DNA of 64,000 nucleotides, from NCBI GenBank assembly GCA_047495785.1, contig JBLDXI010000010.1, positions 744,001 through 808,000 on the forward strand. Reading direction: 5' to 3'. The notes under the pieces were generated by a model. It saw only the letters and a program-made list of their open reading frames with translations. It was not told the DNA's origin and made no database searches. Position 1 is the first letter of the stretch. Every line of letters starts with the position of its first letter. Both the position numbers and the translations under genes were made by a program. Of this stretch, positions 4,205 through 59,112 are shown piece after piece. The stretch is from Lepidodermella squamata. Its lineage: Eukaryota > Animalia > Gastrotricha.

Positions 4205-7200
4205 TTAATCTAAATATGCGGGCATGATTTCCGATTCTGGTATGTCCATTCCGGCTTCAACGTGTGCTTTTTGGCTTCGAGATGCATCGCTTGTTGACGG
4301 CCTTGAAGACTCAACATTCAAGGGGTTCGCAACCAGCTGACCCTCAGCCATCCTATTACCAAGAATTCCCGCAGCTGCCATTTTCTTAGCCTCTTCCACA
4401 GCCTCGATATGCTTCAGGTAATTCTCCGCTGCATGTTTGTTTCGTATTTTCACCCTCAATTGATGCAACTCCCTCACCCGCCTGGCATCGCGGATTCGTT
4501 TTAGAAAGTGGTTGAAGTTGTGCCGAAGACGAGCCATGTCTCGAGATAGGGTCATGTAGTCCAAGCAAACGACTATTCCCATAAAGAAGCCACAAATTGA
4601 CAAAACCATGGACGCCGTAGCAACAGCGGTCTCTGATTCATAGACCACGACTTTCTTAGGTTTCGGAGCCTTTAAAAGCGCATTCTGAGAACAAAACAGT
4701 GGTTGCTTGTCCCATGTTGAGTTCTCATTGCATCGCCAGTTTGCAAATGAGCTAGTTTGATTCTTACTAGGCTCGTAGCCTCGATTCCAATCACACTCGA
4801 ATGAGATTATATCACCGTAAACAATTGTTTTGATTTCAGACGAAGAATTTAAAATCCGATAACTTGCAATTTCGAATATTGCAGGGACTTTGCAGCTTAC
4901 AACTAAAACGATTACATCAGCCTTAAACCCTGGGTTTTCAAACTGTTCTTACGTAAACAAGACAATGAATTGGTAGACCATACGCCTGAGTCCAAGCAGG
5001 TATTGACTACGGATGACAGTGGAGTCGACTCAGTTCCAGGTTGGACGTACAGGCTGTTAGCTCCTTTCACGCACCTCATTGTTACTTGATCGCCGGAAAA
5101 ATATGTACCAATCTTTGTGCCCTCAAGGATCGCATTCTGCTCGGAGATCGGGTTGCCGCAGGTAACAACTGATAACGAAAGTAGATGTCAAGTTATAATA
5201 TTGCAGATTCGTCACCTCAATACCTGTGCACTGCGGCTGTTCGACTGGCGACCATGTTCCGTTTTTCTGGCAAACCTTGACGAAATAATCGATATCGACA
5301 CTTGGCTTGAAGCCCTTCAAACACGTAAATGACGCCACTCCACCTGTAAAGTTACCAGACACATTGTGGTAGGTGTTTACACCCTCAATAAAGCCTTTGC
5401 ATGTTGGCACTGTAAATTATTAATAAGGAGTTTCCTCTCATCAAAGATTAAATGATTACGTTGGCATTGCGGGGTTCCATCGACCCAAGACCAGCCAGTT
5501 GGAGGCTTGAAGCTACAATAAGCCTCTCCACTTTTAGAACCAGTCATGTTGAAGCCCAAATTACAGGTGTATTTCACTCGATCTCCCATTCGATAAAAAT
5601 CGTTCGTGAAATTCACGTAGGTCGCAGCTGCTAAGCTGGGAGGATCCGGACACGCGGCTGATAAACACTTTGGCTTGTTCGCGTTAACTTGAAACCAGTT
5701 CCCAGTTGCTGGGTTTGGATTGAACGGGTCGCATATGTGCATAGCAGTATCTGAGGCTGATGCTGCTTTGAAACCAGCATCGCAGGTCATTATGGCAGAT
5801 TGCATGTAACCAGCCATTCCTTTGAAAGATGACAACGGTGGAGCAGTCAATGTCCAGCTGGAGTTGGGTGCGAGTTCAATGCCGAGAGGTACACTGGAGC
5901 AGTTGTTTAGAGGGTCTAGTTTAAAAGAATATTTAGAGTGAGCTCAGCATTTAAAAAAATGTCACAGACTTAATCTTCGGCCACAAGTGTAGAAACAACT
6001 AGCTTGAGCTTGCCCACTAGGATCGTTCTCACAGGCGCCAGTTGACGCCCAATCGCCACAGGTGCAGTTGTAGTCAACTGGCATTCGCGGGTCGACGTCA
6101 CACTCGCAAGTTGCGTAGGCCGTACAGCTGGACTGGCACGATGGCCACATGAATCCTGCGTTTGATAAGCACTGGCCTCGATCTTTCCAATTTGTGCACG
6201 AAGGACCGATGTCAGTTTTGACTTTAGTGCATAAGGACTGATTTGACCGAGGCATGCACATGTTCGAGCCTAAACAGATAGCTGCGGCAGGACAAGCCGG
6301 TACGCAGACGTCTATTCGAAAAACAGATTAGGTTTGCTAAATGACCTGAAGCCTCTTCTTACTATCGTCACATTTTGGACCACCGTACAAAGCAGGGCAT
6401 TTGCAGGCGTTGTTTGCTATGCACGTTCCGCCGTTGCTACAATCAGGGATGCAGATAGCTACAGAGGATTACACAAGTCATCATAAACAGCTTCACGCAA
6501 GATCTGGAAAACAAACGCGTCTCACAAGCGCTGCCGTTGTAGAAAGTGGTGCAAATGCAGGTTTTAGTTGAGCGGTCACAGGTGCCACCGTTCTGGCAAC
6601 TCGGGTCGCAAAGATCTGAAGGAGAATAAGCAAACATTGGACTGATTGAATTGACGCCTCGACTTACAATCATTGCACTTTGGGCCACCGTAACGAACAG
6701 GACATTTGCAGGTGTTATCTTTTAGGCACGTTCCGCCGTTGCTACACTCAGGAATGCAGACAGCTAGAATGCAATGTATATCTAATATAAGCAACTACAT
6801 GAAAGAGCAAGAAACAAACGCGTCTCGCAGGTGCTGCCGCTGTAGTACGTGGTGCAATTGCATGTTTTAGTTGAGCGATCACAGGTGCCACCGTTCTGAC
6901 AACTCGGGTCGCAAAGATCTGAAAAGCCATTCAAACACATTGAAATGCAAACTAGTCCAAAATATATGCCGATTTAATAGACAAGGATCTTTTCATCAGG
7001 CTCTTCCTTAACCTATCAGGCAATCAAGTACAGAACACACGGATCTCAAATTCACTCGGAGTTCCAGATGGGGGGAAATTATATTTCTCCATGGGTAGCC
7101 GTGGAGTATCCCTAATTATTGGACGAATTATTTATTATCCATTACGTTTAGAATTCGACCTTGTTATATGAAAACATTCCGCATGATGATCAGAAATTCC

Positions 7201-10200
7201 AAGGGAATATAAAAGGGTGGCATGCAACCTACCCAAAGCCGTTTCATTGAAGGTTGAACGTAGCGTGAACTCCTTTGAACTGTCATTTTGGCGAAGGAAG
7301 ATTTCGTTGTTCGCATCGACGTGAATGAAGAACCCTTGCACGTTGACTGCCTCGTAAGCAATCCCGGATGCCTGAGGCCTTTCGCAGAATGTCGCATCCA
7401 GAGCGAGCCCAGTATTGTTATCGTTAAAGGTAATCTGTAGCCTAAAACCGGTGTGACGAAGGACAAAATTGGGCTTGCTGAAGGATTCAAAAGAGGTGCA
7501 ATTGCCTGTCAGGCCTTTTATCTTCCTCCACTGAAATTCGCTTTTCAAATCAGGATCTGGCTCGATCTGGCTAAATGTCAAGTTGTTTTGCAGGCGAAGA
7601 ACGTAGCAGCTTGCCATTTGGAATACAGGCCGAATCACTAGGATGTTGCACTTGCTAGGTGGCTTGCATTGATTCGAAGGAGCCTTGCATGTACACGTGT
7701 TGCCCAGCAGACATTGTTGGTTCGAACTTGTGCAATTGTTACAGATGGCTATTTGAAAAGGAGAGAAATTATAATTGGCTCGAAAACAAGTCATTTTCCA
7801 GGGCCAATGCATTGGGCCATATGAATAAAAATCGATTTAGGGAAATAGAAAATTAAAATGAAACATACGTGTCTCGCAGGCGCTTCCGTTGTAATAATTA
7901 GGACAAATGCAGGTCTTAGTCAAGTTATTACACGTGCCTCCATTCTGACAACTTGGATTGCACAGAGCTGAGAAAAGGTTGGAGAAACAATGATAGGCGT
8001 TTGCTAAACACCAATTAGACTTACTTGTTTCGCATAGAGAGCCGGTGTAACCAGGTGGGCAGGTGCATTCATTAAACCCAATGCACGAACCACCATTTTT
8101 ACACTGAGGGTTACATGCAACTACGGAAATATATTGATAGATCAATCAAATCAATTTAAGTAATTACCAGCAAACGATCGACACAAATTCTTAACGCTCA
8201 GAAGCTGGCTGGTGTTCAGGCTCGATTTGAAAATTGACAAGCAAGAATAGCTCGAATATGGGGTTGAATCTGGTGGCCTGTAACAAGCTTGATTTGATAG
8301 ATTTTCATAACTTGGTAGTTCAGTTCACCTAGCTCCCACTACTAATCGCGGGGCTGTTGTTGGACTGTTACCAAAACTCATCTCGGCAGTTAAAAACGAT
8401 TCGTTGCAAAATAAACGGCCTATCTTTGAAGGTGTGTCATACACGAATGCCACGAATTGCCAGCCTTGTGAAATGACGCAACGCGGTTCCCAAACCTGAC
8501 TATCTTTCATAAAGTTCATCCATATCTGGTTGTTGTTCGAATGTTCCAGATGAAAACCGTAGGAATTATCAGGCTGCGAAAATTGAAGCATGATAGCTCC
8601 TGAGTAGCTTTTCATTGCATAGAGAAAGACGGCCAAGGTATACGACGTAGTTGAGCCAAAATCCAATTTACTGGAAGCGACCTCGAAAAACCGATTTACC
8701 ACACCTCCGTTAGGGCTAAAACCGGCCTGGAAACCAGTGTTTGGAACTCCATAGGGCCCAGTGACCCATTCAACGGCTGTTGTTGAGAATTGACCGTTTA
8801 GAGCTGTTACTGTCGAAACATCTCCGGCTCCATAATCAGAGTTGAGTGGCCAGAAACCGACTACATCGCTTAGTGAATTGACCGCAACTTGTACTATCGC
8901 TGATGCATTCAGTGCTGGGGAATTAAGTTGCCTTAACTAATGAAATTCATCTAGCTGAAACTCACATATCCCGCATCGCCCTCCGGTGTAGCCACCTGGA
9001 CAGTTGCACAGATTGAAGCCGACGCAAGAGCCTCCGTTTTGGCATTGCGGTGAACATTGAACTATGCATAATCACAATTTTTAATTAGGGAAGGCGAAAG
9101 CTTTAAAACTAACTTTGAAAAAATTGGCAGCTATCTTTGACTTTCAACAATTGGCTCGTATCAAGAGCAACGTTGTGATACGAGACGCAAGCGAATTTCG
9201 CTCTTGAACGTTCATCTTGCCTCCTGATGAACAAGTTTTTTTTTTTAAACTGCCTCCATAGAAACTATTTTTTATGACAATGCTCTAACCTGAGGCCGAT
9301 TTGCATGGTTGTGATATTTCTGAACCCAGAGTCCTCTACTCGAGAAGCTCCAAACGAATTGTTGCAAAATATTGAATTATTTCGGCTGGTCGCATTGTAA
9401 GTGGCAGCCACGAATTGCCACCCACTTGTCATGACACATGGCATGTTAAAGATTGGGCCGGGGGACCCATTACCGAAGTATAAATGATCTGTACCGCCAT
9501 CCTGCCATAGATGGGTCGCCCATTGAGTATCTGGCCTGCTCCACTCAACCAGCGCCATCCTGTTAGTTGCCAGAACATGAACGAATAAAGATACGGTCCA
9601 AGATGCTTTCAGGGCTAAACGGTCATCGTCAAAGCCAATGTATTGATTTGTCGCCCCATCCGTACTGAACGAACCATATGAAGCTCCTAAGAGACCAGTG
9701 TTGAATGAGGGCGCAAGACCGAACCAGCCATCCAATTTGGACGAACTGACATCTCTCGCCCGATAATCAGCTCCCAGAGGCCAATAAGCCATAACACTAG
9801 GTAATAGAGCTAACTTTGATCTGGCGAATGTATCAAGCTCAATTGCTGTGACAGAATGGTTGAAGTTATTTTAAATTATTTGATTACGTTTTGCTCACCT
9901 ATCCCGCAAGATTCGCCGGTATAACCCGCCGCACATAGGCATAAATTGTAACCTACACAAGTTCCGCCATTGAAGCAGGGAATTTTGCATTCAACTGTAA
10001 AATTATGATACCAATATTGCAATATCGCTAATTACAAAAGGACATTACCAGTAAACATTCGACATAAATCGCGAACTTTCAGCAACTCAGCAGCTGTCAT
10101 ATCTTTTGTTATAATAGAAATGCAAGCCAATGACCCAGTATTTCCGACGTTGATTGACGCCGGTGCATAAATTCCAATGTTCACAGTGTCGGATGTCAAT

Positions 10201-12664
10201 GGAATTCCAGTCGGCTGGACGTAACCGCTCCACCAATCGTTGCACAAAGTTCGCAAGTTTTTTGTGGTTGAATTATAAGTCGTGGCTATAAATGTCCACT
10301 TGTTCACGACCACACATTGCGAATTACTACCAACGCCGTCTGGAGCCATCGAGTTTATCCAAATTGTATTTGATTCAGCAGGTGCGCGTGAGAAATGCAT
10401 GCCGTAGGCAGCATTCGAGGTTGATGGCTTCGCGAATTCGATGAAAACATCAAAATTGCTTTGGCTAGCCATGTTTACCCACATTGATATCGACCAAGAC
10501 TTGGCGCCAATGTCGAGTTTCGCCGATTTCACTACGGCATACCGCCGGGGAGAGAGAGTCTTGTCGAAAGACATTGCCGAAGCATCCCGCCCATATGGCC
10601 CTACTGCGAAGGCGTAATCCCTTGACATCATACCATCGATCTTATTGGCTGACGCGTCTCTCGAACCGTATTCGTAACTCAACGGCCAATAGGCTACTAG
10701 GTCCGAGTAGACAGCCAGTCCATCACTTATAACTTTCTTGTTGATAAGAACTTAAAATAAATGCTTCAGAAATGGGTAATAAGATCTCTCCTTCATAGCT
10801 TACAAGTGTCGCATCTTGGAGGTGCCAATGGTGCCGGGCACTTGCAGATATTAACACCAACACATGTACCGCCATTTTTGCAATAGCCAGGTGAGCATGA
10901 GACTAGTGAACAATTTAACGATAGTTTTCGGATGGTGGGCAAGAGGTTCATGGTTTGTATCTTACCTGTGAAAAGCTTACATAGTTCCCTGGCTTGTAGC
11001 ATCTCATTTGCATTCAGTGACTTTGAATAAACTGAAACGCAGGCCATTTTGCCATCAAAATAATTTGTCGTTCCAATCGTGCTGAAAGTCATCACAAAAT
11101 TAAGATATAACTCATTAATCTCGATTTTACTCACCTCTTTCCAATATAAAGCGAATCTGATGTTATAGGTGGTCCAGCTGTCGGGCCATATGTTGCGGCT
11201 ATGAAGGATTCATCGCAGAAGAACTGAAGCAATTTTGTGACATTATTCCAAGTTACAGCTACGAACGTCCACTTATTACTGACCGCACAATTTACTTCAA
11301 GGCCATAAGGATTTCTAGTGTTGAACCAAAGCGTATTGACATCTTGATGATACCAGAGATGCATTCCCCAGTCTGCCCCAGGCGCAGTTGGGTGCAAAAA
11401 TTCTAAAAGAGGATGTTGAAAGGTTGCTGCATTCATCCACAACGAAAGCGTCCAAGAGGAGGTGTTGAAGTTCAGCAGTCCTGAGTTTGCGATAATATAG
11501 CTCGAAGCAGTCAGACCGCTCAAAGATGAAGCCACTTTATTATCGAAAGGACCAGTGTCGTATGACAAATACATTGTCGGTTTTCCGTGGATTTTGTTCG
11601 TGGAAACATCCGTTGCGGCGTATTCGCTGGTAAGCGGCCAGTAGGCAACCAATCCAGGCATGTCGCTCAATTTCGAGGCGATTGTTTCTTTATCGGTAGT
11701 AACTGTTTTTGATGCAATGATACCATTTTTTAATTACCTACTAGGCAACTTACTCAACTCGCATAGGGCTCCAGCATACCCGATTGGGCAGTCGCACACA
11801 TTTTTAGCGGCGCAAGTTCCACCATTTTTGCATTGAGGGTTGCAATCAGCTTGATTAGATCAAGGAATAGGAATATTGAAGCATTATTTTCAATTGACAT
11901 ACGAATGAAAAGCTGACATGTATCTTTGAGTGCTAAGAATTGAGCATCACTCAACGTTGCTTTATGCAGCGAAACGCAGGCATATTTGCCGACCGTGGCC
12001 GGGTAGCCGGGACTTATGAAATAAATGATATTAGAAGGTACTGAAACTTGACGTTCAGCAGCTCTTACCGGTAGCCAATATGTAGCGTTTCTGATGTAAC
12101 TGGAGCGAGAGGAGACGCCAATTTAGGGCCTGAAGCTGTGCTGCAAAAAGCATTCATCTTTGCATTCACCGAGTCGTAGGTGAATCCGACAAATGTCCAC
12201 GTGAAATTCATTACGCAGGGCATTATAGCAACGGACGTACTAATTGAGTTGATGAACAAATCGTTGACGTTGGGCCATTGCCACAGTTGCATCAACATTG
12301 GCAAATACTCGAGAAAGGGCATGCCAGCATTAATCTCAGTCTTGACCCAAAGCGCGAAGCTCAATGAAGAGTTGACAATGTTAACAGCTGGAGAGGTTAT
12401 TGTAACCCAATGTTTGTTAGGATTGTCCACCTGAATAGCAGAGCTTGAGGAACCGAAAGGACCTTGGCCGAAGATCGGAGGTTCCGTGTTTGAAACTCCA
12501 TCGGCTACTTCAAGGGCATCTCGCGCCTTGTAATAACTCGTCAGAGGCCAATATGCTACCGTGCTGGGCTGGAGGCGAAGCTGGTACTGAATGTAACCAG
12601 TATCATAATCGACGCTGGATACTATGCAGAAGGTCGTAGAAAACAAGATCAAGGTTAGCCACAT
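4205..12664 (-). CDS. Multi-exon type-I membrane protein, copy A: SP-(LamG/pentraxin-EGF)x5-EGFs-AbfB-EGFs-ShKx2-sushi x5-TM-tail
   Basis: ATG at 12664 ([17 protein letters not shown]); about 27 short GT-AG introns, mostly phase 1. Five domains begin V(A/G)(Y/F)WPL and contain W(T/Q)FV(A/G)xTY (about 12600-11903, 11705-10965, 10750-10029, 9846-9114, 8913-8167). About 12 EGF modules, mostly CxNGGxC. AbfB-like exon 7748-7233. ShK motifs (C..WK.RGQC..N..FM...C..SC; C..WA..G.C) at 6215-5975. Sushi domains 5905-4690. [24 protein letters not shown]; TAA at 4205. Confidence 0.88.
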
Positions 12665-14483
12665 CTTGCGACAACACAAATTAGGATGGTAAGTGTACAG
12701 TCCTATCTTAGTGAAAGTGCCTTGAGCGCAACTCATTAATAATTGAAGTTTGAAGAAGACCGTGTTTCGCTGGTCGATAGCGCCTTTGCACTTTTTATAG
12801 CTATATCTAAGGCGATCTAAGGCGATCACTAAACGTTTCCTTACTTAATACTATGATTTATTGGCTACGATCGAGTGGCTATCGACTCCTATAGCATTGA
12901 GAGCATTGGCTTGAATATCGGCTTTTTCGCAATTTCATTTTTCCGCAGTTCGGGCAATACCGTTCTAGATTCATGTTTTAAGTGCGTCTGCCAAAATGTA
13001 ACGTCAACGTCTTAGTTTGACAGATCGATCCTCTTGATTTATATATAGGGAAATATAAGACGTTGCACCATCGATTCGCAGACATTTGACAGACGAGTGG
13101 TAGACTGTGGATGAGCCGTCAAAATAAGAATTATTTGTCTGTTATTTACATTACGTCCAAGAAATTCTCCCCAGGGTTTTTAACAGGTTTTGGACAATTC
13201 TTGGAATTTTCTCCTCACAAGCCTAAGCCTAAGCCTTTTCCACATCCGTTCGTAAGAGGAATATCTCTTGTGTTTTTGAGCTACGCCCGTCTTCACGCGA
13301 CTCAGGGTAAAAAGGTAAGATTTTTTGATATTATTATTTTAATATTTTTATTATTATATTAATATTATTTTAATGAAAATAAACACCAATCCAGTCATTC
13401 AGTTAATGGTCATTAAAATTCAGCTTTGATCAAACTGCTACGTTCACACTTATTTTTGCGACTGTCGAACCGCCTGCTGCGTGAGAGCCACACGAATCCC
13501 TTACCGCCTTTTTCCAAGTTGGAGAAAAGCGGTAAATGGCAGGCACCGAGATTTCCTGATCCTCGTAAACACATCTTTTGCCATTGATTTTGTCAAACGT
13601 AGGGAATAGAACAGTGAAACAATGAAGTGAGCCGCAATGAGTGAAACCGTAACTTACGACATTTTTCAAATTGGAGTTCATTGCACATTCTGATGCAGTT
13701 TTTCATTTCAAATCCAAAACCCAGCAATTTTTAATATCTGCTACCATTTGCAGGATATTAATGATTGAGTGCGCGCACATTAAATTTGGAATTTTTCAGG
13801 AGAAGCAATAAAAAGAAAACTTAAGATTCGCACATTTAAAGCGACAAAATTTGATGAAACATCTGCAATATGCGTTGACTGAAACGCCACGTTTAGAGGT
13901 CAGTATGACCAACTAGGGCAGTTTGAGACGCAGATTCTGAATTTCGCTTATTAAGAACCTAAGCCCCGCCGATCTACCTCAAATTATCTCTTTTCTGTAT
14001 AGAACTGATTTTTGCATTATGCCGCTGTCCTTGCCTCTCTGTTTTTGTGTTTATTGGACCAATGAAATCGACAGTTTCCGTTAGGTAGAAGTGAGGAGTC
14101 AAAAAGCCAAAAGGCCAATAGCTAAAAAGCTACACGCCGCAAACGGTGTTGAGATTTGAGGATCATGACGTCCCCGAAACCTCAACTAATAGCCATGGCT
14201 ACTATTATTTCCGAAACTCCGAAAATGGTCCAAAAAAGAGGCAATTATTCGAGGGGGCTATTATTTATCGGTAATTGGCCAATTTCATCATCGCAAGTCG
14301 TTTGCGCTGTTGGATTCTCTGTTTTTTTTACCCATGCTGCTAATTATCCTCGGCATCAACAAACAACGGCTTACGTCCACCACATTTAATCCGCTTAGCA
14401 GTAAAAGGCGACGCAATTAGGACAGCTTTTTCCCTCCTCCTCCCTCCCCCAGCGCGCCAACTGCTTCGGACAAGGCATGGCGT

Positions 14484-15171: not shown

Positions 15172-15173
<2 letters not shown>

Positions 15174-15206
<33 letters not shown>
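15174..15206. repeat. (GT)n microsatellite
   Basis: About 16 perfect GT units. Confidence 0.95.
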
Positions 15207-15210
<4 letters not shown>

Positions 15211-15474
15211 ATTGGTGACTTGGCACAGTGCGCGCTTAAATTTGGCTGTGTCACGCATTTTATATACGCATATCCAAAGCGGGATACACTTTTCCGGTGT
15301 TCACATAGCCACATCCATACGTTAAAAGGGTTTTTAAATCGGTGCTCATATTAATTCAGCTCGGTCTCAGATTGGGATTCTGGATTCTTAGGGTTTCCTG
15401 AACCTTAAAACTTGACACCCTTAAATATCAGGTTCAAAATTGAAGCTGAGAATCCATTTCATAACAGGTCAAAA

Positions 15475-15739
15475 ATCTATTGACCGCATCGTACTGCCAA
15501 ATGTGGGTCCTGCGGGAAATACTCGAGCAAGGGCATGAACCCATTAATCTCAGTCTTGAGACAAGCCGCACCACTCCACGAAGAGTTGCCAGACATTTGA
15601 AATTGATGACTGCACTTTGACCCAATGCTGATTCAAGTATTCAAATTAAATAGCCAAGCTTGAGAAACTGCAAGGACCTAAGCCGAAAAGTGGAGGCTCT
15701 GTGTTTGAAACTCCGTTGGCTACTTCAAGGACGTCTCGC
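15475..15739 (-). pseudogene. Decayed fragment of exon 1 (LamG1) from a fourth, B-like copy of the multidomain gene
   Basis: Aligns with 29636-29900 (RTHIWQYDAVNR vs KTHMWQYDAVDR; gaaactccgttggctacttcaagg), with indels and stops. Confidence 0.85.
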
Positions 15740-28000: not shown

Positions 28001-30039
28001 GCTGTTTTCCGGTGAGAATTCGGTAAAAGCAACCTGGTTTTTCATGGTGTTCGCCTGGTTCGTACTTACATTATTATTATTATACGGTCCAGAAAAAATG
28101 CTAGATTATCGATTTTTCCCTTGCTATATAATGTACTATGCAATATATTTATATTGCCTCTATGACTTTACGGACTCCCTGTAGCTTACAAGTGTCGCAT
28201 CTTGGAGGTGCCAACGGTGCGGGGCACTTGCAGATATTCACCCCGACACAAGTACCGCCATTTTTGCAGTAGCCAGCAGAACAGGATACTAGGAAACACT
28301 TCCCGTTCGTTTTTCAAATAATCAAGAGATCTATATCTTACCTGTGAAAAGCTTACATAGTTCCCTGGCTTGCAGCATCTCATTTGGATTCAGCGACTTT
28401 GAGTAAACTGAAACGCAGGCCATTTTGCCATCAAAATAATTTGTAGTTCCGATCGCGCTGAAAGTTAACACATCTTAAGATATAGCTCAGTAATCAGGAT
28501 TTTACTCACCTCTTTCCAATATATAATGTATCTGACGTTATAGGTAGTCCAGCTGAAGGACCATATGTCGTGGATATGAATGATTCATCGCAGAAGTATT
28601 GCAGCAATTTCGTGATATTATTCCAAGTTACAGCAACGAATGTCCACTTATTACTAACCGCACAATTTACTTCAAGACCAGCGGGATTCCTGGTATTGAA
28701 CCAAAGAGTATTGATATCTTGATGATACCAGAGATGCATTCCCCAGTCAGCCCCGGGCATAGTCGGGTGCAGAAATTCCAAAAGAGGATGTTGAACAGTT
28801 GCTGCATTCATCCACAACGAAAGCGTCCAAGAAGAGGTGTTGAAGTTCAGCAATCCCGAGGTTGCGATAATATAGCTCGAAGCAGTCAGACCGCTCAAAG
28901 ATGAAGCCACCTTGTTATCGAACGGACCAATGTCGTAGGTCAAATACATTGTAGGTTTTCCGTGGATTTTGTTCGGGGAAACATCCGTCGCACCGTATTC
29001 GCTATTCAGAGGCCAGTATGCCACCAATCCTGACATTTCACTCACTTTCGAGGCGATTATATCTTTATCGGTAGCGACTGTTTTGATCAAATTAAATCAA
29101 GGATCGCTGGTTTCCTGTTTGCAACTTACTCAACTCGCATAGCGCCCCAGCATATCCAGCTGGGCAGTCACAGACGTTTTTAGCAGCGCATGTTCCACCA
29201 TTTTTGCATTGAGTTTGGCAATCGGCTAGGATAAATTCAAAAATAGCTCAAGTCATTATTTTGAAATCACTTACGAGTGAAAAGTTGGCAAGTCGCTTTG
29301 AGCGCTATGAATTGAGCGTCACTCAACGTTGCTTTATGCAGCGAAACGCAAGCAAATTTGGCAACAGAAGCGTTGTAGCCGGCGCTTTTTTTATAAATAG
29401 AATAGATATTAGATGCAATCAAAGCTGAGGCTCATCAATAGGTTACCGATAGCCGAACCCCAACGTGTCGGACACAACTGGAGGGGTAGGAGACGACCAT
29501 GTAGGCCCCGAAACGGTACTGCAAAAAACATTTATCTTTGCAGCCCCCGAGTCGTAGGTGAATCCAACAAAAGTCCACGTATTATTCATTGCGCATGGCG
29601 TCCAACCACCCGCATGATTGGCGTTGGCGAACAACCTATCGACAGCATCGTACTGCCACATGTGCGTCTTCTGCGGGAAATATTCGAGCAAGGGCATGAC
29701 GCCATTAATCTCAGTCTTGACCCAAGCCGCAAAACTCCACGAAGAGCTGCCGACATTCAAAACTGATGACTGCACTGTAACCCAATGCTGATTCGGGTAG
29801 TCAACTTGAATAGCTGAGCTGGCTGGACCGAAAGGACCTTGCCCGAAGATCGAAGGTTCCATGTTCGAAACTCCGTTGGCTACTTCAAGGGCATCTCGCG
29901 CCTTGTAATAACTCGTCAGGGGCCAATATGCAACTGTACCAGGCTGGAGCCGAAGCTGGTATTGAATGTAACCAGTATCATAATCGACGCTGAATACTCC
30001 GCAGAGGATCGCGGAAAACAAGAACAAGGTTGAACGCAT
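19086..30039 (-). CDS. Multi-exon LamG-EGF-AbfB-ShK-sushi-TM protein, copy B
   Basis: ATG at 30039 (MRSTLFLFSAILCGVFS); exon-by-exon colinear with copy A. The transposon insertions fall in introns, and no frame disruption was seen in the exons inspected. Confidence 0.85.
22679..22839. mobile_element. piggyBac-like MITE (161 bp)
   Basis: TTAA on both sides (22675-22678, 22840-22843). TIR CACTTTAACTGCCA(A/G)AAT(A/G)GACT...GATCGAGATTT. Lies in an intron of copy B. Confidence 0.8.
25828..28181. mobile_element. Non-autonomous Tc1/mariner-type TIR element (2354 bp)
   Basis: ~76 bp imperfect TIRs starting CAGGGAGTCCGTAAAGTC, with a TA duplication. The empty site cttcaTAgcttac is intact in copies A (~10795) and C (~39915). 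No transposase ORF recognised. Confidence 0.88.
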
Positions 30040-32573: not shown

Positions 32574-32679
32574 TAAACATCCTTGCTGAGCTGCTGAGTG
32601 TATTGTTACCCAAGGATGAAATAGGTAATTATGAAATAGATAAAAGAATTGAATCTCAGACCTCTAATTATGGAAAAAA

Positions 32680-32913
32680 TTGACAGAGCTCTTGCAACAA
32701 ATGCTCACTCGTCCACCAAATAATGATTATAGGCATGGCCGTTTCAATCAACTAACCGACGAAAAGCTAATAGTGCTCGCTGTTTTTTGTATAACCTTTA
32801 ATATCGGTATAATGTGTTTAAATGAAACTTTTTTGAAACCCGGTAAGTCATTGCCTTTTAAAGGTTACAAAATCTTTAGAGCTGATCGACCAGGTACTTC
32901 ACTTTTCTGCTGA
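32680..32913 (+). mobile_element. Decayed non-LTR retrotransposon (LINE) AP-endonuclease N-terminal fragment
   Basis: NIGIMCLNETFLKPGKSLPFKGYKIFRADR matches the LINE APE pattern (I.CL.ET.L...GY...R.DR). Broken ORF-like sequence at ~31430-31950 may be its ORF1. Confidence 0.65.
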
Positions 32914-33180
32914 CTCATAACAGATGCTGCTGCACAAAAACAGCAGAAAAAGAACCAACATTGCCAGTAAAATTTGCCAGCGAATCAATTAAGCGCAAAT
33001 TGGTGCCTTATTAAGCGTTGCAATACAGTAAGTTATTGTTAATAAACCAAAACTATCTAAAATCCCATTTGATAAAATAAGGTTTTGAAGACACAAAGAA
33101 TCTTTAGCCATATAATCATTTATCATTATCTCGCCGGCTCACAAAATTATCATCCGAATACAGGTCTTGACACTCATTTC

Positions 33181-36100
33181 TCAATCGGAATATACGGGCA
33201 CGATTTCTGTCTCCGGTATGTCCATCCCGGCTTCAACATGTGCTTTTTGGCTTCGAGATACATCGCTCGACAATGGCCTTGATGACCCGGCATTCAAAAG
33301 GTTTGCAACCAGCTGACCCTCAGTCACCCGATTACCGAGAAATCCCGCAGTCGCTAATTTCTTAGCCTCTTTCACATCCTCGATATGCTTCAGGTAATTC
33401 TCCGCTGCTTGTTTGTTTCGTAATTTCGCCCTCAATTGATGCAACTGCCTCACTCGCCCAGCATCGCGTAGTCGTTTCAGAAAGTGGTTGAAGTTGTGAC
33501 GCAGACGAGCCATGTCTCGGGCAAGTGTCATATAGTCCAAACACACTACTATTCCCATAAAGAAGCCGCAAATCGACAAGACCATGGAGGCAGTAGCAAC
33601 AGCAGTCTCCGATTCATAGGCGACGACTTTCAAAGGTTTCGGAGCACTTAAAAGAGCATTCTGAGAGCAAAACAGTGGCTGCTTGTCCCATGTTGAATTC
33701 TCATTGCATCGCCAGTTCGCATATGTGCTTGTTTGATTCTTGCTCGGCTCGTAACCTTGATTCCAATCACATTCGAATGAAATTATTTGGTCGTAAACGA
33801 TTGTTTCGATTTCAGACGAAGAATTCAAAATTCGATAACTTGCAATTTCGAATGTCGCTGGGATTTCGCAGCTTACCACTGAAAAAATTGCATTTCTCCT
33901 CAAATGATATTTCCGATTAAAACGCTTACGTAAACAAGCTAATGAATTGGTGGACCATACACCTGAATCCAAGCAGGTATTTACCACAAATGGCATAGGC
34001 GTCGACTCAGTACCAGGTTCGACGTACAAGCTGTTTGCTCCCTTTACACATCTCATGGTTACTTGATCGCCGAACATATAAGTACCAGGCTTTGTGCCTT
34101 CAAGGATCGCATTCTGCTCGGTGATCGGGTTCCCGCAAGTAACAACTGGTAAAGGTAAAAGAAGACGTGTTTAAATTACAGAATCATCAGCTCAGTCAGT
34201 ACCTGTGCACTGCGGCTGTTCTATAGGCGTCCATGTTCCGTTTTTCTGGCAAACTTTGACGAAATAATCAATATCGACACTTGGCTTGAAGCCCTTCAAA
34301 CACGTAAATGACGCCACTCCACCCGTAAAGTTACCAGACACGTTGTGGTAGGTGTTTACGCCCTCAACAAAGCCTTTGCATGTTGGCACTGTGAATTATT
34401 AATAAGGAGTTTCCACTCATCAAAGATTAAATGATTACATTGGCATTGAGGGGTTCCATCGACCCAAGACCAGCCAGTTGGAGGCTTGAAGCTACAATAA
34501 GCCTCTCCACTTCTAGATCCAGTCATGTTGAAACCAGAATTGCATGTGTACTTCACTCGATCTCCCATTCGATAGAAATCGCTCGTGAAATTAACGTAGG
34601 TCGCAGCTGCTAAGCTGGGAGGATCCGGACACACGGCTGATAAACACTTTGGCTTGTTCGCGTTAACTTGAAACCAGTTCCCAGTTGCTGTGTTTGGATT
34701 GAACGGGTCGCATATGTGCATGGCCGTGTCTGAGGCTGATGCTGCTTTGAAACCAGCATCGCATGTCATTAGGGCAGATTGCATGTAACCAGCCATTCCT
34801 TTGAAAGATGACAACGGGGGTGCAGTCAACGTCCAGCTTGAGTTGGGTGCGAGTTCTATGCCGAGGGGTACACTGGAGCAGTTGTTTAGAGGGTCTAGTT
34901 TAAAAGAATATTTAGAGTGAGCTCAGCATTTGAAAAATTGTCACAGACTTAATCTTCGGCCACAAGTGTAGAAACAACTAGCTTGAGCTTGCCCACTTGG
35001 GTCATTCTCGCAGGCCCCAGTGGAGGCCCAATCGCCACAGGTGCAGTTGTAATCAACTGGCAATCGCGGGTCGACATCACACTCGCAAGTTGCGTAAGCT
35101 GTGCAGCTGGATTGGCACGATGGCCACATGAATCCCGCGTTTGATAGGCACTGGCCTTGATCTTTCCAAGTTTTGCATGAAGGGCCTATGTCAGCTTTGA
35201 CTTTCAAGCATAATGACTGACTTGAAAGCGGCAAGCACATGTTCGAGCCCAAACAGCTAGCTGCAGCAGGACAAGCCGGTACGCAGACGTCTTTTAGAAA
35301 AAGATGAGGTTTGAATTACTTTATTTGAAGCCTCGACTTACTATCATCGCATTTTGAACCACCGTAGAAAGCAGGGCATTTGCAGGTGTTATTTGCTATG
35401 CACGTTCCACCGTTGCTACAATCAGGAATGCAGATGGCTACAGGGGATTACATATTTGATATAACCAGCTGGAAAAAGAGCTAGAAAACAAACGCGTCTC
35501 ACAAGTGCTGCCGTTATAATAAGTTGTGCAAATGCAGGTTTTAGTTGAGCTGTCGCAGGTGCCACCGTTCTGGCAACTCGGATCGCAAAGATCTGAAAAA
35601 GCCATTTTCGAACCAGTCTAAAATATTTGCTAACTTGCGACCTACCCAAACCCGTTTCATTGAAGGTTGAACGTAACGTGAAATCCTTTGAACTGTCATT
35701 CTGGCGCAGGAAAATTTCGTTGTTCGAATCGACATGAATGAAGAACCCTTGGAAGTTGACAGCCTCGTAAGCCACCCCGGATGCCTGGGGCCTTTCGCAG
35801 AATGTCGCATCCTGAGCGAGCCAAGGATTGTTATCGTTAAACGTAACCTGTAGCCTAAAGGCGGTGTGACGAAGGACAAAATTGGGCTTGCTGACGGATT
35901 CGAAAGATGTGCAATTCCCTGTCAGGCCAGGTATCTTCTTCCACTGAAATTCGCTGTTCAACTCAGGATCTGGCTCGTCGTGGCTAAATGCGAAGTTGTT
36001 TTGAAGGTGAAGGACGTTGCAGCTCACGATTTGAAATACAGGCCGAATCACTAGGATGTTACACTTCCTAGGCGGCTTGCATTGATTCGAAGGAGCCTTG

Positions 36101-39100
36101 CACGTACATGTGTTGCCCAGAAGACATTGTTGGTTCGAACTTGTACAGTTGTTACAAACGGCTATTCGACATGGAAGAAACTATTATTGGTCCGAACGCG
36201 AGGTTTCTAGGATCTAGGTGTTGGCTCATATGGATAGGCATAAAAATCTATTTTGAGAAACTTAAGATTTGCTACTACAGATAATCTACCAGAAAATAGT
36301 ATGTACATAGTTGCTGTTTTATTTTCTAATCGAAGAATTTTCCAAATTCGAAAATTGAAATAAACATACGCGTCTCGCAGATACTTCCGTTGTAAAAGGG
36401 AGGGCAATTGCAGGTCTTGGTCAAGACATTGCACGTGCCACCATTCTGACAACTTGGATTGCACAGACCTGGCAAAAAGGATGAAGAAACGATTATTCTT
36501 TAACCTGAACATATGCATAACCCCAATCGGACTTACTCGTTTCGCAAATGGAGCCGGTATAACCAGGCGGGCAGCTACACACATTGAACCAAATGCACGA
36601 ACCGCCGTTTTTACACGAAGGGTTGCACGCAACTGCGGAAAGTTATTGGTAAATCGGATATAGAAACAATAAATCGAGAAATCGAGAAATGTACCAGCAA
36701 ACGATTTGCATAAATTCTTAATGCTCAGAAGCTGGCTGGTATTCAGGCTCGATTTGAAAATTGACAAGCAAGAATAGCTCGAATATGGCGTTGTATCTGA
36801 TGGCCTATGCCAAGCTTGATTTAACGGATTTTCATACCCTGATAGTTCAATTTACCTAGCTCCCACTACAAATCGCGGAGCTGTTGTTGGACTGTTACCA
36901 AAACTCGTATCGGAAGGTAAAAACGAGTCGTTGCAAAATAAACGGCCTTTGTTTGACGGTTTATCATACACAAATGCCACGAATTGCCAGCCTTGTGAAA
37001 TGACGCAGGGCGGTTGCCAGTTCTGATTATCCTTCATAAAGTTCATCCAAATTAGGTTGTTGCTCATGTGTTCCAAATGAAAACCAAAGGAATTATCAGG
37101 CTGCGTAAATTGAAGCATGATAGCTCCTGGGTAACTTTTCATTGCATAGAGAAAAATGGCAAATGTGTACGATGTTGTTGAGCCAAAATCCACTTTGTTG
37201 GAAGCGACCTCGAAAAACCTATTAACTACACCTCCATCCGGGCTTAAACCGGCCTGGAAACCGGTGTTTGGAACTCCATAAGGCCCAGTGACCCATTCAA
37301 CGGCTGGTGTTGAGAATAGGCCGTTTAGAGCTGTTACTGTCGAAACATCTCTGGCTCCATAGTCAGAGGTGAGTGGCCAAAAGCCAACTAAATCGCTCAG
37401 TGAATTTACTGCGACTTGAAAGTTCGTTGATGTATTCAAAGCTTGGCGATTAAATCGTGTTAAGCAATGAACAAATTGATCTAGCTGAAACTCTACTTAC
37501 CCACTCCACATCGTTCCCCAGTGAAACCAACTTGACAGTTGCAGAGATTGAAGCCAGCGCAAGTACCTCCGTTTTTGCATTGCGGTGAACATTGAACTAT
37601 GAATGGTATCAATAACTAATTGAATAAGGCGCAAACCATTGAACTAACTGTGGAAATATTGGCAGGTATCCTTGACTTTCAACAATTGGCTCGTATCAAG
37701 AGCAACGTTGTGATACGAGACGCAAGCGAATTTCGCTTTTGAACGTTCGTCTTGCCGCCTTCATAAAAATTTATAAATAAAATAAATAAAATAAAATAAA
37801 ATAAATAAAATATTTTCGATGGCCATGAGCTAACCTGAGGCCAATTTGCATGTTTGTGAGATTTGTGAACCCAGCGGCCACAACTTGAAAAGCTCCAACA
37901 GAGTTGTTGCAAAATAGAGTATGGTTTTGGCTGGTCGCATCGTAAGTGGCAGCCACAAATTGCCAACCGCTCGTCATGACACACGGGATATTAAAGAATG
38001 GGCCGGAGGGCCCATTGCCCAAGTATAAACGATCTGTACCGGCATCCTGCCATAGATGGGTAGCCCATGAAGTATCTGGCCTACTCCACTCAACAAGCGC
38101 CATTCTGTTAGTCGCCAGAACATGAACAAATAAAGACACCGTCCAAGATGCTTTGAGGGCTAATCGGTCGTCGTCGAAGCCGACGTATCGACTTGTCACC
38201 CCATCTGTGATAAAAGATCCATACGACCCTCCTAGTAAGCCAGTGTAGAAGGAAGGAGCGAGAGCGAACCAACCATCCAATTTGGACGAACTGACATCTC
38301 TCCCTCGATAATCAGCTCCCAGAGGCCAGTAAGCCATCACGCTAGGTAATAGAGCTAACTTTGATCGGGCGAATGTATCAAGCTCAATTGCTGTAATAAG
38401 AAATACTTTGAGTTATTCAAAATCATCTTAAAATAATGTCACTCGCCTGTCCCGCAAGATTCGCCGGTATACCCCGCCACACATAGACAGAGATTGTAGC
38501 CAACACAAGATCCACCATTGTAGCAGGGAATTCTGCATTCAACTATAAAATAACGTCACCAACTTGCAAAATCAATAAGAATACGACATTACCAGTAAAC
38601 ATTCGACATAAATCGCGAACTTTCAGCAACTCCGCGGCAGACATTTCTTTCGTAATAATAGAAATGCAAGCCATGGACCCAGTATTTCCAACGTTAGTTG
38701 ACGCCGGGGCATAAATTCCAATGTTCACAGTGTCGGATGTCAATGGAATTCCAGTTGGCTGGACGTAACCGCTCCACCAATCGTTGCATAGCGTTCGCAA
38801 GTTTTTCGTTGTTGAGTTATAAGTCGCGGCTATAAATGTCCACTTGTTGACGACCACACATTGCGAATTACTACCAACGCCGTCTGGAGCCATCGAGTTT
38901 ATCCAAATTGTATTTGATCCAGGAGGTGCGCGTGAGAAATGCATGCCGTAGGGAGCATTCGAGGTTGATGGCTTGGCGAATTCGATGAAAACATCATAAT
39001 CGTTTTGGCTAGCCATGTTTACCCACATTGATATCGACCAAGACTTGGCGCCGATATCAAGTTTCGCCGATTTCACTACGGCATACCGCCGGGGAGAGAT

Positions 39101-41778
39101 AGTCTTGTCGAAGGCCATAGCAGAGAGATCGCGGCCGTATGGACCTACTGCGAAGGCGTAATCCCGTGACATCATACCATCGATCTTATTGGCTGAGGCG
39201 TCTCTCGAGCCGTATTCATAAGTCAAAGGCCAATAGGCAACGGGTCCACATCTTTTCATCGGAACATTAAATACTTTTATCGTGCCACTTTCATCTTAAA
39301 CCATCGGAAATGCATTATTTCATGAAAAGCTATCTTAAACCGTCGGAATATGAAAGAAGCATTATCTATCGGAACACGCGAATTATTTCATCGGAACACG
39401 CGAATTATTTCATCGGAACACGTGTTATTTTTCCACCTTAAAAATTGAAAACCGTATTAGAATCATTCCTCGATTTTTAACCGAGTAGCTTTTTCAATTA
39501 TGGAGTTTCTCCAACAGTTTTATGCATCTGACGATGAGGCTGTATTTGATGAACAAGAAGACCATTATGAAGAAATTTCCCGTGATGAGCCTACTTACGA
39601 CGAAGATGACGACCCTGACATCGTGCCAGACGACCAGGACTTTGTTGTACAAGAGAAGCCATGAGAAAATGTGTTTTTCCGATGAATAAATGTGTTATTC
39701 CGATGAATTAATTGGTTTCAATGGGTAAAATAAATATTCCGATGGTTCCGATGGTTTAAGACAAAACTAGCACGATAAAAGTATTTAATGTTCCGATGAT
39801 TTGATATTACTTCTAGGCAACTAGGTCTGAGTAGACAGCCAGTGCATCGCTTATGACTTTCTTGTTGATTAAAACTAAAAACAAATGCTTCAAATTTGGG
39901 TATTAGGTCTAGCTTCATAGCTTACAAGTGTCACACCTAGGAGGGGCCAACGGTGCAGGACACTTGCAGATATTCACACCAACACAAGTACCGCCATTTT
40001 TGCAGTAGCCAGCAGAACATGATACTAGGAGTCATTTCACGTTCGTTTATTAAATAATCAAGAGATCTATATCTTACCTGTGAAAAGCTTACACAGTTCC
40101 CGGGCTTGTAGCATCTCATTCGCATTCAGTGACTTTGAATAAACTGAAACGCAGGCCATTTTGCCATCAAAATAATTTGTCGTTCCAATCGTGCTGAAAG
40201 TAATCACAAATTATAGATATATAACTCATTAATCTCCTTTTTTACCCACCTCTTTCCAATATAAAGCGTATCTGATGTTATAGGTGGTCCAGCTGTGGGA
40301 CCATATGTTGCAGCTATGAAGGATTCATCGCAGAAGTATTGTAGCAATTTCGTGAAATTATTCCATGTTACAGCTACGAATGTCCACTTATTACTAACCG
40401 CACAATTTACTTCAAGACCATCGGGATTCCTGGTATTGAACCAAAGAGTATTGATATCCTGATGATACCAGAGATGCATTCCCCAGTCTGCTCCGGGCAT
40501 AGTCGGGTGCAGATATTCCAAAAGAGGATGTTGAACAGTTGCTGCATTCATCCACAGCGAAAGCGTCCAAGAGGAGGTGTTGAAGTTCAGCAATCCCGAG
40601 TTTGCGATAATATAGCTCGAAGCAGTCAGACCGCTCAAAGATGAAGCCACCTTATTATCGAACGGACCAATGTCGTATGACAAATACATCGTAGGTTTCC
40701 CGTGGATTTTGTTCGGGGAAACATCCGTCACGGCGTATTCGCTGGTAAGCGGCCAGTAGGCAACCAATCCAGGCATGTCGCTCAATTTCGAGGCGATCGT
40801 TTCTTTATCGGTAGCGACTGATTTGAATTAAATGAAATTGCGGACTTTTATATTTCTGAGGCAACTTACTCAACTCGCATAGGGCTCCAGCATATCCAGC
40901 TGGGCAGTCGCAAACGTTTTTAGCAGCACACGTTCCTCCATTTTTGCACTGAGTGGCGCAATTAGCTGGGTTAGATCAAGGAATAATAATATTGAAGCAT
41001 TATTTCAATTCACATACGAATGAATAGTTGGCAAGTGTCTTTGAGCGCTAAGAATTGAGCATCACTTAACGTTGCTTTATGCAGCGAAACGCAAGCATAT
41101 TTGCCGACCGCAGACAGGTGTGTGGAACTTGAGGAATAAATTGTGTTACAATCTACCAAAACTTGGCTTAAGCAGCTCTTACCGGTAGCCGATACCTAGA
41201 ATACCGGATGTAACTGGAGTGGCAGGACACGGCGATTTAGGCCCTGAAGCTGTGCTGCAAAAAGTGTTCATCTTTGCATTCACCGAGTCGTAGGTGAATC
41301 CGACAAATGTCCACGTGAAGTTCATTGCGCATGGCATTGCAACTGGACCCGTAGAAATGGGGTGGACGTACAACTGGTTGACGCTACTCCATTGCCACAG
41401 TTGCGTCTGGTATGCGGAATACTCGAGAAAAGGCATGCCAGCATTAATCTCAGTCTTGACCCAAAGTGCGAAGCTCCATGAAGAGTTGACAATGTTTACA
41501 GCTGGAGAGGTTATTGTCACCCAATGTTTGTTAGGATTGTCTACCTGAATAGCTGAGCTTGAGGAACCGAAAGGGCCCTGGCCGAAAATCGGAGGCTCCG
41601 TGTTTGAAACTCCGTTTGCTACTTCAAGGGCATCTCGCGCCTTGTAATAACTTGTTAGGGGCCAATATGCTACCGTACTGGGCTGGAGGCGAAGCTGGTA
41701 CTGAATGTAACCTGTATCATAATCGACGCTGAATACCCCACAGAGGATCGTGGGAAACAAGAACAAGGTTGGCCGCAT
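33181..41778 (-). pseudogene. LamG-EGF-AbfB-ShK-sushi-TM protein, copy C; interrupted in the LamG3 exon (pseudogene or truncated secreted form)
   Basis: ATG at 41778 (MRPTLFLFPTILCGVFS); colinear with A and B but with one fewer EGF exon pair. The insertion at 39242-39813 changes GCC TAT to GCC TAG (39815-39813). Downstream exons inspected are still open. Confidence 0.8.
39242..39813. mobile_element. 572 bp non-autonomous DNA transposon with 8-bp TSD (hAT/Mutator-like, superfamily unresolved)
   Basis: TAGGCAAC duplicated at 39234-39241 and 39814-39821. A 30 bp subterminal inverted repeat TCATCGGAACATTAAATACTTTTATCGTGC sits 14 nt in from each end. Absent from copies A and B. Confidence 0.85.

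Positions 41779-55897: not shown

Positions 55898-59112
<3,215 letters not shown>

Follow-up and report, generated by a model that had tools for sequence, protein, structure and literature searches.

The 64,000-nucleotide stretch of Lepidodermella squamata DNA analysed here (the window) probably encodes three functional tandem paralogues, together with one dead fragment, of a lineage-restricted type I membrane glycoprotein of 2,200-2,280 amino acids that would serve as a selectin-type multivalent receptor.

Locus organization and transcription

Self-BLASTN of the window revealed three colinear blocks on the same strand (4172-12667, 19053-30192, and 33154-41942), offset by 14,881 and 14,101 bases and sharing 80-88% block-to-block identity with introns counted in. 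Together with spliced models, these offsets bear out a sequence-only reading that had described three colinear multi-exon paralogues at ~14-15 kb spacing. The modeled copies are:

4205..12664, minus strand: c1, 25-exon CDS, 2279 aa, ORF intact (spliced model)
19086..30039, minus strand: c2, 25-exon CDS, 2276 aa, ORF intact (spliced model)
33181..41778, minus strand: c3, 23-exon CDS, 2214 aa, ORF intact (spliced model)

Position 4205 is the first base of the c1 stop codon and 41778 is the A of the c3 ATG; exon boundaries of c1 were projected from c3. The spliced models of all three copies are free of internal stops, their reading phase is unbroken across 23-25 exons, and a three-way alignment showed their splice positions to be concordant, as would be expected of the single long multi-exon gene proposed earlier for each copy. 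Splice sites are GT-AG throughout except for a single predicted GC-AG intron in c3, between 38447 (end of one exon) and 38390 (start of the next); exon 7 of c3 has a predicted acceptor at 39294 that is peculiar to this copy. Most introns are 50-60 nt long, with those of c1 spanning 47-314 nt. The longest introns of c3 (631 nt) and c2 (intron 6, 2407 nt, enlarged by an insertion at ~25783-28189 that appears as a gap in self-BLASTN) both lie between EGF2 and LamG3, a junction at which the c1 intron is 53 nt.

RNA contigs from run X1 extend over 33215-34111, taking in 3' exons of c3, and RNA joints at 33930/33878 and ~34439/34388 correspond to predicted c3 introns 22 and 20, showing that the 3' exons are transcribed and spliced. 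This support is limited to the 3' quarter of c3 and to 2 of its 22 introns, and many of the contigs are no more than 90-95% identical and so may stem from paralogues.

Domain architecture

Pfam searches and AlphaFold/Foldseek analyses gave the order signal peptide-[Laminin_G_3-EGF]x5-EGF-Cys-rich-AbfB/CBM42-EGFx2 or x4-ShKx2-sushi x5-TM-118-aa tail. Hydropathy placed an N-terminal signal-like segment and one hydrophobic TM segment in the protein; neither a further segment of either kind nor an enzymatic domain was found. The features, all on the minus strand and in c3 unless indicated, are:

41018..41778: signal peptide and LamG-like module 1 (exons 1-2; module alignment, no Pfam match)
36695..40817: LamG-like modules 2-5 and EGF exons (Pfam Laminin_G_3, EGF_2), comprising the next seven features
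40078-40817: LamG2
39926-40024: EGF after LamG2
38593-39294: LamG3
38447-38542: EGF after LamG3
37649-38390: LamG4
37501-37596: EGF after LamG4
36695-37441: LamG5
36370..36632: EGF5 and EGF6 exons (Pfam EGF_2/EGF; 6-Cys pattern)
35646..36161: Cys-rich EGF-like piece and AbfB/CBM42 beta-trefoil (one symmetric, phase 1-1 exon)
7233-7748 in c1 and 21864-22382 in c2: equivalents of the AbfB exon
35342..35592: EGF7-8 (Pfam EGF_2/EGF)
6363-6918 in c1 and 21251-21803 in c2: four EGF exons after AbfB
34949..35290: two ShK-like six-Cys modules on one exon (Pfam ShK; Cys spacing)
33667..34894: five sushi/CCP modules (exons 20-23; Pfam Sushi; Cys/Trp pattern)
33184..33606: TM and cytoplasmic tail (hydropathy)
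about 33538-33606: TM segment
33184-33537: 118-aa cytoplasmic tail

The domains listed in the sequence-only reading (LamG x5, EGF, AbfB, ShK x2, sushi x5, and TM) were thus recovered, except that the EGFs had been undercounted and the alternative label of pentraxin for the LamG modules was unsupported. Six EGFs and a Cys-rich EGF-like piece precede the AbfB module, and four (c1 and c2) or two (c3) follow it; c3 has one EGF pair fewer than the other copies, in which a ~305-nt internal duplication gave rise to the four EGF exons after AbfB.

Against the Laminin_G_3 (PF13385) cut-off of 27.6 bits, LamG modules 2 and 3 scored 32.9 and 36.3 bits, modules 4 and 5 fell below it (19 and 24.1 bits), and module 1 had no Pfam match. 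All five modules nonetheless align, keeping WPL, Y, D, and a pair of Cys unchanged throughout, and this indicates that the modules are homologous to one another. The AF2 model of LamG3 (pLDDT 72, pTM 0.76) is a ConA-like two-sheet jelly roll, matching the lectin-like jelly rolls of clostridial Hc-N/NTNH and then the N-terminal domains of ADGRD1, NELL, and collagen XV. A pentraxin (PF00354) identity was not supported: there was no Pentaxin match at E 0.01 or better and no HxCxS/TWxS signature, the corresponding strand reading SW(S/T)xS(L/M)W, without His or Cys.

Toward the membrane, ShK-like module 1 scored 26.7 bits in one query context and had no match in two others (PF01549, cut-off 20.9), while module 2, at 16.3 bits, was under the cut-off; the six-Cys spacing is present in both. 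Of the sushi modules, 2 (36.9 bits) and 3 (30.1 bits) were above the PF00084 cut-off, 4 and 5 were weak (~14.8 bits, E 0.04), and module 1 was assigned from its Cys/Trp pattern alone. These domain calls and the hydropathy profile agree with the stalk of EGF and sushi repeats, with one TM segment, that had been described. No Pfam or recognizable signaling domain was found in the tail, whose C-termini in the three copies (YSD, YLD, and CSD) lack a hydrophobic PDZ-type ligand. Within the strongly conserved TM and membrane-proximal tail, the sequence CLDYMT(L/I) may represent a Cys at the membrane edge plus a motif of the YxxPhi type, with a basic helix after it.

The AbfB/CBM42 module

The AbfB module matches its Pfam family significantly (PF05270; 63.2 bits vs. 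a 22.8-bit cut-off, E 3.6e-17), and phmmer matched it to the A. kawachii AbfB structure (1WD3; 2e-8). The best Foldseek matches to its model were all CBM42 structures (target TM 0.86-0.89, rmsd 1.7-1.9 A). At the level of the fold, the lectin-like heads that had been proposed therefore hold up, as ConA-like jelly rolls and a CBM42 beta-trefoil. His, Tyr, and Asp have roles in CBM42 sugar pockets (PMC12493170). The beta-subdomain pocket residues R97-H98 and D117-A118-T119-F120 are retained in c1, c2, and c3, and this type of pocket binds furanosides (PMC12493170). In the alpha pocket His is replaced by Leu and in the gamma pocket Asp by Arg; since two of the three trefoil pockets lack canonical residues, the module could be purely structural.

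AbfB domains are known from extracellular proteins of animals, among them otogelin, which is part of acellular gels (PMC4948705), and CBM42-like folds were found in sponge, cnidarian, and vertebrate proteins, with otogelin-like proteins among the AFDB matches. Among 1.84 billion representatives, the best matches by sequence were multi-AbfB, glycoside-hydrolase, or T9SS-tailed proteins, at 40% identity or less; no bacterial protein exceeded 43% identity.

Divergence among the copies

Copies are 86-89% identical in exons and 67-74% in introns, and dN/dS between them is ~0.19 overall. On these grounds, all three look functional. Low dN/dS extends along the full length in all copy pairs, with no domain close to 1. 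The sushi region is the best conserved (95-100% in places; dN/dS of the sushi modules 0.07-0.12), while LamG module 1 is the most divergent module (identity 54-72%, dN/dS 0.31-0.36). Similarity between copies is mosaic, in keeping with gene conversion and birth-and-death at the locus. A tblastn search of the window with c2, run after masking of the three genes, recovered one further element:

15470..15738, minus strand: decayed first-exon relic (residues 48-137), interrupted by an in-frame stop codon and two frameshifts

This relic is 82% identical to 29630-29899 by BLASTN and is the trace of a lost fourth copy.

Relatives and comparison with known receptors

Searches of very large protein libraries yielded just two relatives, ~50%-identical fragments (P0151 and P0152) encoded on eukaryotic scaffolds L001 and L002 of an ENA metagenome from one sample. 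Their identity is 49-50% in the part comprising sushi 5, TM, and tail; even at this distance, the TM and the stretch of tail next to the membrane hardly vary in alignment. The longer scaffold, L001, which carries just the 3' 3.9 kb of its gene, is colinear from the last LamG module through the EGF run, two ShK modules, sushi, TM, and tail, has fewer introns in the LamG/EGF part than c1-c3, and lacks the AbfB exon. Since such a colinear relative exists elsewhere, the family extends beyond this locus and species. The earlier suggestion of a lineage-specific, locally expanding family is partly supported, by three constrained tandem copies and a relic, and is qualified by the metagenomic relative. 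As the AbfB exon is symmetric and absent from L001, it was either shuffled into this subfamily or lost from the AbfB-less relative. No protein with the same domain order was found in sequence searches of these libraries and, judged from such searches, the order seems to be undescribed.

The overall design is that of the selectins, which share a distal carbohydrate-binding head, EGF, a sushi stalk, one TM, and a short, non-enzymatic tail. However, selectins carry a C-type lectin head, and no Lectin_C match was found by Pfam in any exon scanned; the proteins described here instead carry five Laminin_G_3 jelly rolls and a CBM42 trefoil, have added ShK-like modules, and are about three times larger. 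They are like selectins in design, but are not members. Neurexin, CASPR, and Crumbs have in common with them the LamG-like/EGF alternation, type I membrane topology, and a conserved short tail, but neurexins lack sushi, ShK, and AbfB. Neurexin-type membership was rejected, with Laminin_G_1/2 cassettes (no Pfam match at E 0.01 or better; Laminin_G_3 only) and a PDZ-binding C-terminus both missing. SVEP1/polydom and CSMD, which are sushi-rich and carry EGF with pentraxin or CUB, are likewise large extracellular mosaics that join sushi and EGF to a module of ConA-like (pentraxin) type; however, VWA, HYR, CUB, and Pentaxin had no match in c1-c3 proteins, and SVEP1 is secreted, whereas these proteins have a TM segment. 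The AbfB module shares the beta-trefoil, with beta-pocket residues kept, with CBM42/AbfB structures (1WD3; C. thermocellum CBM42A, 3KMV; AtAbf43C, 9NXH) and otogelin AbfB, but it has no glycoside hydrolase attached, its alpha and gamma pockets are degenerate, and it is set between animal EGF modules.

Discussion

We infer a recognition or adhesion function for this receptor family. Five ConA-like heads spaced by EGFs, and a CBM42-like trefoil, all borne on an EGF/ShK-like/sushi stalk, would jointly provide a multivalent binding surface, whether for glycans or for other ligands exposed on surfaces. A single canonical His/Asp sugar pocket is retained in the beta subdomain of the trefoil, and the conserved TM and membrane-proximal tail may couple ligand binding to trafficking or cytoplasmic adaptors. 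It is in the LamG module farthest from the membrane that the copies diverge most, and segments may have been swapped between copies through gene conversion or unequal crossing-over.

Alternating LamG and EGF modules, a TM segment, and a conserved tail recall neurexin and Crumbs, and the resemblance raises the less likely, though serious, possibility that these proteins are self-directed adhesion or matrix-organizing molecules rather than receptors for foreign ligands. They would then serve as cell-cell or cell-matrix glue, as neurexin, Crumbs, or otogelin do, with AbfB and LamG binding endogenous glycoconjugates or matrix. That otogelin, in acellular gels, has an AbfB domain favors this (PMC4948705; AFDB otogelin-like matches). 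Purifying selection throughout, with no domain near a dN/dS of 1, is also in its favor. However, tandem expansion in which the distal module diverges fast, accompanied by gene conversion and a dead copy, is more typical of recognition families, and only Laminin_G_3, not Laminin_G_1/2, was detected by Pfam. The conserved CBM42 pocket type, moreover, binds furanosides, such as arabinofuranose and galactofuranose, which to our knowledge are made by bacteria, fungi, and algae but not by animals.

Alternatively, the AbfB module could have been acquired recently from bacteria by horizontal transfer, conferring microbial sugar specificity on the receptor. Its best matches (multi-AbfB, glycoside-hydrolase, and T9SS-tailed proteins), its single symmetric exon, and its absence from L001 would be compatible with such a transfer, yet identity to bacterial proteins is low, the exon, whose splice sites are normal, additionally codes for a Cys-rich piece of animal type, CBM42-like folds exist in other animals, and loss in the other lineage accounts equally well for the data, making transfer very improbable. 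We find it hardly credible that the exon run represents two or more adjacent genes (e.g., a secreted LamG-EGF protein and an AbfB/ShK/sushi membrane protein) or that some copies are unexpressed pseudogenes. RNA support is confined to 3' exons, and a gene boundary could hide in the long EGF2-LamG3 introns of c3 and c2; against this, no c1 intron exceeds 314 nt and that junction spans 53 nt, phase continues without a stop in three copies, a second signal peptide or TM segment is lacking, full-length dN/dS is low in all pairs, and the L001 relative is colinear from LamG through the tail.

Within the favored reading of a multivalent, selectin-type receptor, a bolder version, which we consider rather unlikely, is that this subfamily gained the CBM42 module on its symmetric exon and, with diversifying distal heads, constitutes a germline-encoded arabinofuranose/galactofuranose sensor, which would make it a new class of pattern-recognition receptor directed at microbes that are eaten or live as symbionts. 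Since the one conserved pocket predicts binding of sugars that animals lack, the module is a simple candidate for self/non-self discrimination. Mosaic lectin-EGF-sushi receptors, and their lineage-specific expansions, are common in invertebrate genomes, and the locus represents a variant of the well-known receptor plan of "lectin heads on a stalk" rather than a new category. If our interpretation is correct, it would place carbohydrate-binding modules in an undescribed combination on an animal cell-surface receptor, and exon shuffling together with tandem birth-and-death would have built up a repertoire of recognition receptors in a sparsely sampled lineage.

Structure and Transcription of the Putative Receptor Copies

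The DNA of the window is eukaryotic, with a G+C content of 37-50% across its length. Self-BLASTN of the window resolved three colinear, same-strand blocks (4172-12667, 19053-30192, and 33154-41942), offset by 14.9 and 14.1 kb and 80-88% identical in introns as well as exons; all coding runs of these blocks lie on the minus strand. Exons of the third copy (c3) were obtained by chaining open runs via splice sites that preserve the reading phase, and the boundaries in the first and second copies (c1 and c2) were projected from c3 through a three-way MAFFT alignment.

Spliced models of the three receptor copies, each with an ATG start and no internal stop
4205-12664, minus strand: c1; 25 exons, CDS 6840 nt, 2279 aa
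19086-30039, minus strand: c2; 25 exons, CDS 6831 nt, 2276 aa
33181-41778, minus strand: c3; 23 exons, CDS 6645 nt, 2214 aa

The sequence-only reading had described triplicated, colinear, multi-exon paralogues between 4205 and 41778, which is confirmed by the blocks together with three intact spliced models. Its limits are exact, 4205 being base 1 of the c1 stop codon and 41778 the c3 start codon. Exon boundaries show AG/GT in all copies almost throughout, with three exceptions: a 0.6-kb insertion displaces the exon-7 acceptor in c3, the exon-12 acceptor is shifted to an upstream AG common to all three copies, and an EGF pair occurs twice in c1 and c2, where self-BLASTN revealed an internal repeat unit of ~305 nt that corresponds to the EGF pair missing from c3. 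Most introns measure 47-68 nt. Each copy also has two longer ones, of 631 and 208 nt (c3), 2407 and 517 nt (c2), or 314 and 120 nt (c1). Intron 6 of c2 is enlarged by a 2.4-kb insertion at 25783-28189. Intron 8 of c3 (38390-38447) has GC-AG ends (donor ACAG/GCGAGT) where c1 and c2 have GT; this junction is either a true GC-AG intron or one that has begun to decay. We predict that all exons of a copy form a single gene with a full-length transcript, since the phase is continuous in three copies, all c1 introns are ≤314 nt, only one signal-like N-terminus and one transmembrane (TM) segment occur, and an outside relative on a metagenome scaffold is colinear.

Window sequence is present in two public sequencing runs. 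Contigs of one (X2) span introns and exons equally, and this run behaves as DNA. Contigs of the other (X1, labelled RNA) are concentrated at 33215-34111 at a depth of 20-68 and contain joints at 33930/33878 and ~34439/34388, whose intron ends read GT..AG on the minus strand. The joints coincide exactly with the predicted c3 introns 22 and 20, which shows that the 3' exons undergo transcription and splicing. Upstream of the 3' exons X1 coverage is thin, and the identity of many contigs is no higher than 90-95%, a divergence that suggests an origin from paralogues, so the full-length transcript stays a predicted one. At 35791-36051, X1 RNA (depth 56) and X2 DNA contigs match the core of the AbfB exon only, with unlike flanks; elsewhere the genome probably contains one or more further AbfB-bearing genes expressed more strongly than c3.

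Domain Architecture

Pfam matched Laminin_G_3, EGF_2/EGF, AbfB, ShK, and Sushi domains. Their order is a signal peptide, five LamG-EGF units, an EGF, a Cys-rich piece, AbfB, two (c3) or four (c1, c2) EGFs, two ShK-like modules, five sushi modules, a TM segment, and a 118-aa tail. Each protein has 28-35 N-glycosylation sequons and 119-130 Cys. LamG1 was missed by Pfam and aligns with the other four modules. WPL, Y, D, and two Cys are invariant in this alignment, in which different module types are 22-34% identical. For LamG3, which is encoded by one exon, AlphaFold predicts a ConA-like jelly roll (pLDDT 72, pTM 0.76). It is matched best by lectin-like Hc-N/NTNH domains from clostridial proteins, which dominate the PDB for this fold, and next by the LamG/TSPN-type domains at the N-termini of ADGRD1, NELL, and collagen XV. 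The clostridial matches locate LamG3 within a fold and do not point to a toxin. The label 'pentraxin' that had been attached to the LamG modules was dropped, as nothing supports it specifically.

The 516-nt AbfB exon is symmetric (phase 1-1), and its model is a beta-trefoil with a core pLDDT >90 whose top matches are CBM42 structures only (target TM 0.86-0.89, rmsd 1.7-1.9 Å). In CBM42, each working pocket contains His, Tyr, and Asp (PMC12493170). When the receptor AbfB domains were aligned with 60 AbfB domains, R97-H98 and D117-A-T-F120 of the beta subdomain were found to be kept in c1, c2, and c3, while His is replaced by Leu in the alpha subdomain and Asp by Arg in the gamma subdomain; one predicted AbfB pocket is probably functional.

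Relatives of the Receptor

The architecture is undescribed in the sense that searches with single exons did not find it. Against 1.84 billion cluster representatives the AbfB exon gave 621 matches, the best at ≤43% identity. Those examined were bacterial-type multi-AbfB, glycoside-hydrolase (GH2/GH16/GH64), or T9SS-tailed proteins without the receptor architecture, and a Cys-rich match (P0013) had no relevant domain. A homologue search with the LamG3 exon found no relative, which is weak evidence since the length window excluded full-length proteins. The ESM Atlas returned generic bacterial and phage Laminin_G_3 clusters only for this exon, and unnamed short TM proteins only (scores <0.9) for the tail. 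No relative was found in JGI metagenomes scanned with the last-exon alignment, Rfam gave no match over the whole window, and nothing useful was found in the literature on the domain combination. CBM42-like folds occur in otogelin-like and other entries of the AlphaFold DB, some of which we take, from their accessions, to be cnidarian and sponge proteins. AbfB is already known in animal extracellular proteins and characterises otogelin (PMC4948705). That the AbfB exon was acquired horizontally is an unsupported possibility.

With the last exon as query, the matches were P0151 and P0152, each ~50% identical (E 6e-66 and 2e-58, respectively), on eukaryotic-looking scaffolds that both come from one ENA metagenome sample. 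One of these scaffolds, L001, carries 3.9 kb from the 3' part of a colinear gene, with LamG, about six EGFs, two ShK, sushi modules, TM, and tail that are 26-54% identical to the receptor, and this 3.9 kb has neither a match to nor room for an AbfB module. A single 337-aa open run within L001:1-3905 covers the last LamG together with three EGFs, so dense introns like those in the window's genes are not a feature of the whole family. The TM and first ~90 tail residues are strikingly conserved between the window and metagenome lineages, with motifs including SICGFF, CLDYMT, RD..RL.HN, LVANPL, and GMD.P. This conservation argues for a function of the tail, which matched no known domain in Pfam or the ESM Atlas.

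Selection and Probable Exchange between Copies

The three proteins are 84-87% identical. Nei-Gojobori dN/dS is 0.19 for each pair of copies and identity is 86-89% in exons vs. 67-74% in introns, indicating that purifying selection acts on all three. The ratio is lowest in EGF2 (0.00-0.02) and sushi 3 (0.00 for c2-c3), and is 0.31-0.36 in LamG1 and 0.25-0.38 in AbfB; positive selection on whole domains was rejected, as the maximum single value is 0.41 (LamG3, c2-c3). Identity is mosaic, with the closest pair changing along the gene and local values of 67%-98%. This profile is consistent with gene conversion or unequal crossing-over. Between c1 and c2 lies an exon-1 relic.

15470-15738, minus strand: exon-1 relic; receptor residues 48-137, nearest to c2; one in-frame stop, two frameshifts

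The stop and frameshifts indicate that at least one further copy, a lost fourth, has died. Just downstream of the relic, at ~15150-15250, is a (TG)n microsatellite that translates as a THTHTH/CVCVCV run. At 31160-32913, in the c2-c3 spacer, are several ORFs of 70-146 aa that have no Pfam match and look like transposon debris.

Neighbouring Genes

Other genes and coding runs in the window
58-2469, plus strand: class C GPCR-like gene 1; intronless, ANF_receptor and 7tm_3 (Pfam)
16130-18508, minus strand: class C GPCR-like gene 2; intronless, ANF_receptor and 7tm_3 (Pfam)
43598-46051, plus strand: class C GPCR-like gene 3; intronless, ANF_receptor and 7tm_3 (Pfam)
46278-47098, minus strand: pair of open runs that overlap; one weakly matches a KY-like Ig domain (E 6e-4)
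~55900-59200, minus strand: Six-class homeobox gene; SIX1_SD (Pfam, E 8.5e-24), then homeodomain start

The three GPCR-like genes, whose 7tm_3 matches are weak or moderate, flank or interleave the receptor copies. A functional pairing with the receptors was rejected: orientation and spacing relative to the copies are inconsistent, so that no paired unit is seen, and the GPCR-like genes are mutually very divergent, sharing no nucleotide similarity by self-BLASTN. The DNA downstream of gene 1 (2592-3087) is 72% identical to the 3' end and flank of gene 2 (15787-16268); this similarity probably dates from an older duplication in which GPCR sequence was copied too. Gene 3 had no relative at E ≤1e-3 among 5.8 billion proteins in a word-based search. 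For a neighbouring GPCR-like gene, a homologue search was empty, which is weak evidence since the length window excluded full-length proteins, and a search for encoding contigs found none on record. The runs at 46278-47098 are probably part of an unrelated multi-exon gene downstream of gene 3. Exons neighbouring the homeobox gene have long poly-Gln/Ala-rich coding runs.

Implications for Receptor Function

The sequence-only reading had proposed a locally expanding recognition or adhesion receptor family with lectin-like heads on a long stalk. Its structural part holds in the gene models and domains, and its functional part is something we infer. The receptor may instead serve in self-adhesion or the matrix, a role with which selection that is purifying everywhere would be compatible. 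Faster divergence of the distal head and apparent exchange of segments between copies are both seen, as would be expected of a recognition family. In the best-supported interpretation, the genes belong to a lineage-restricted family that is expanding in tandem and encodes type I membrane glycoproteins with a selectin-like logic. Carbohydrate-binding-type heads would be carried on a stalk of EGF, ShK, and sushi modules, and the tail is short, conserved, and non-enzymatic.
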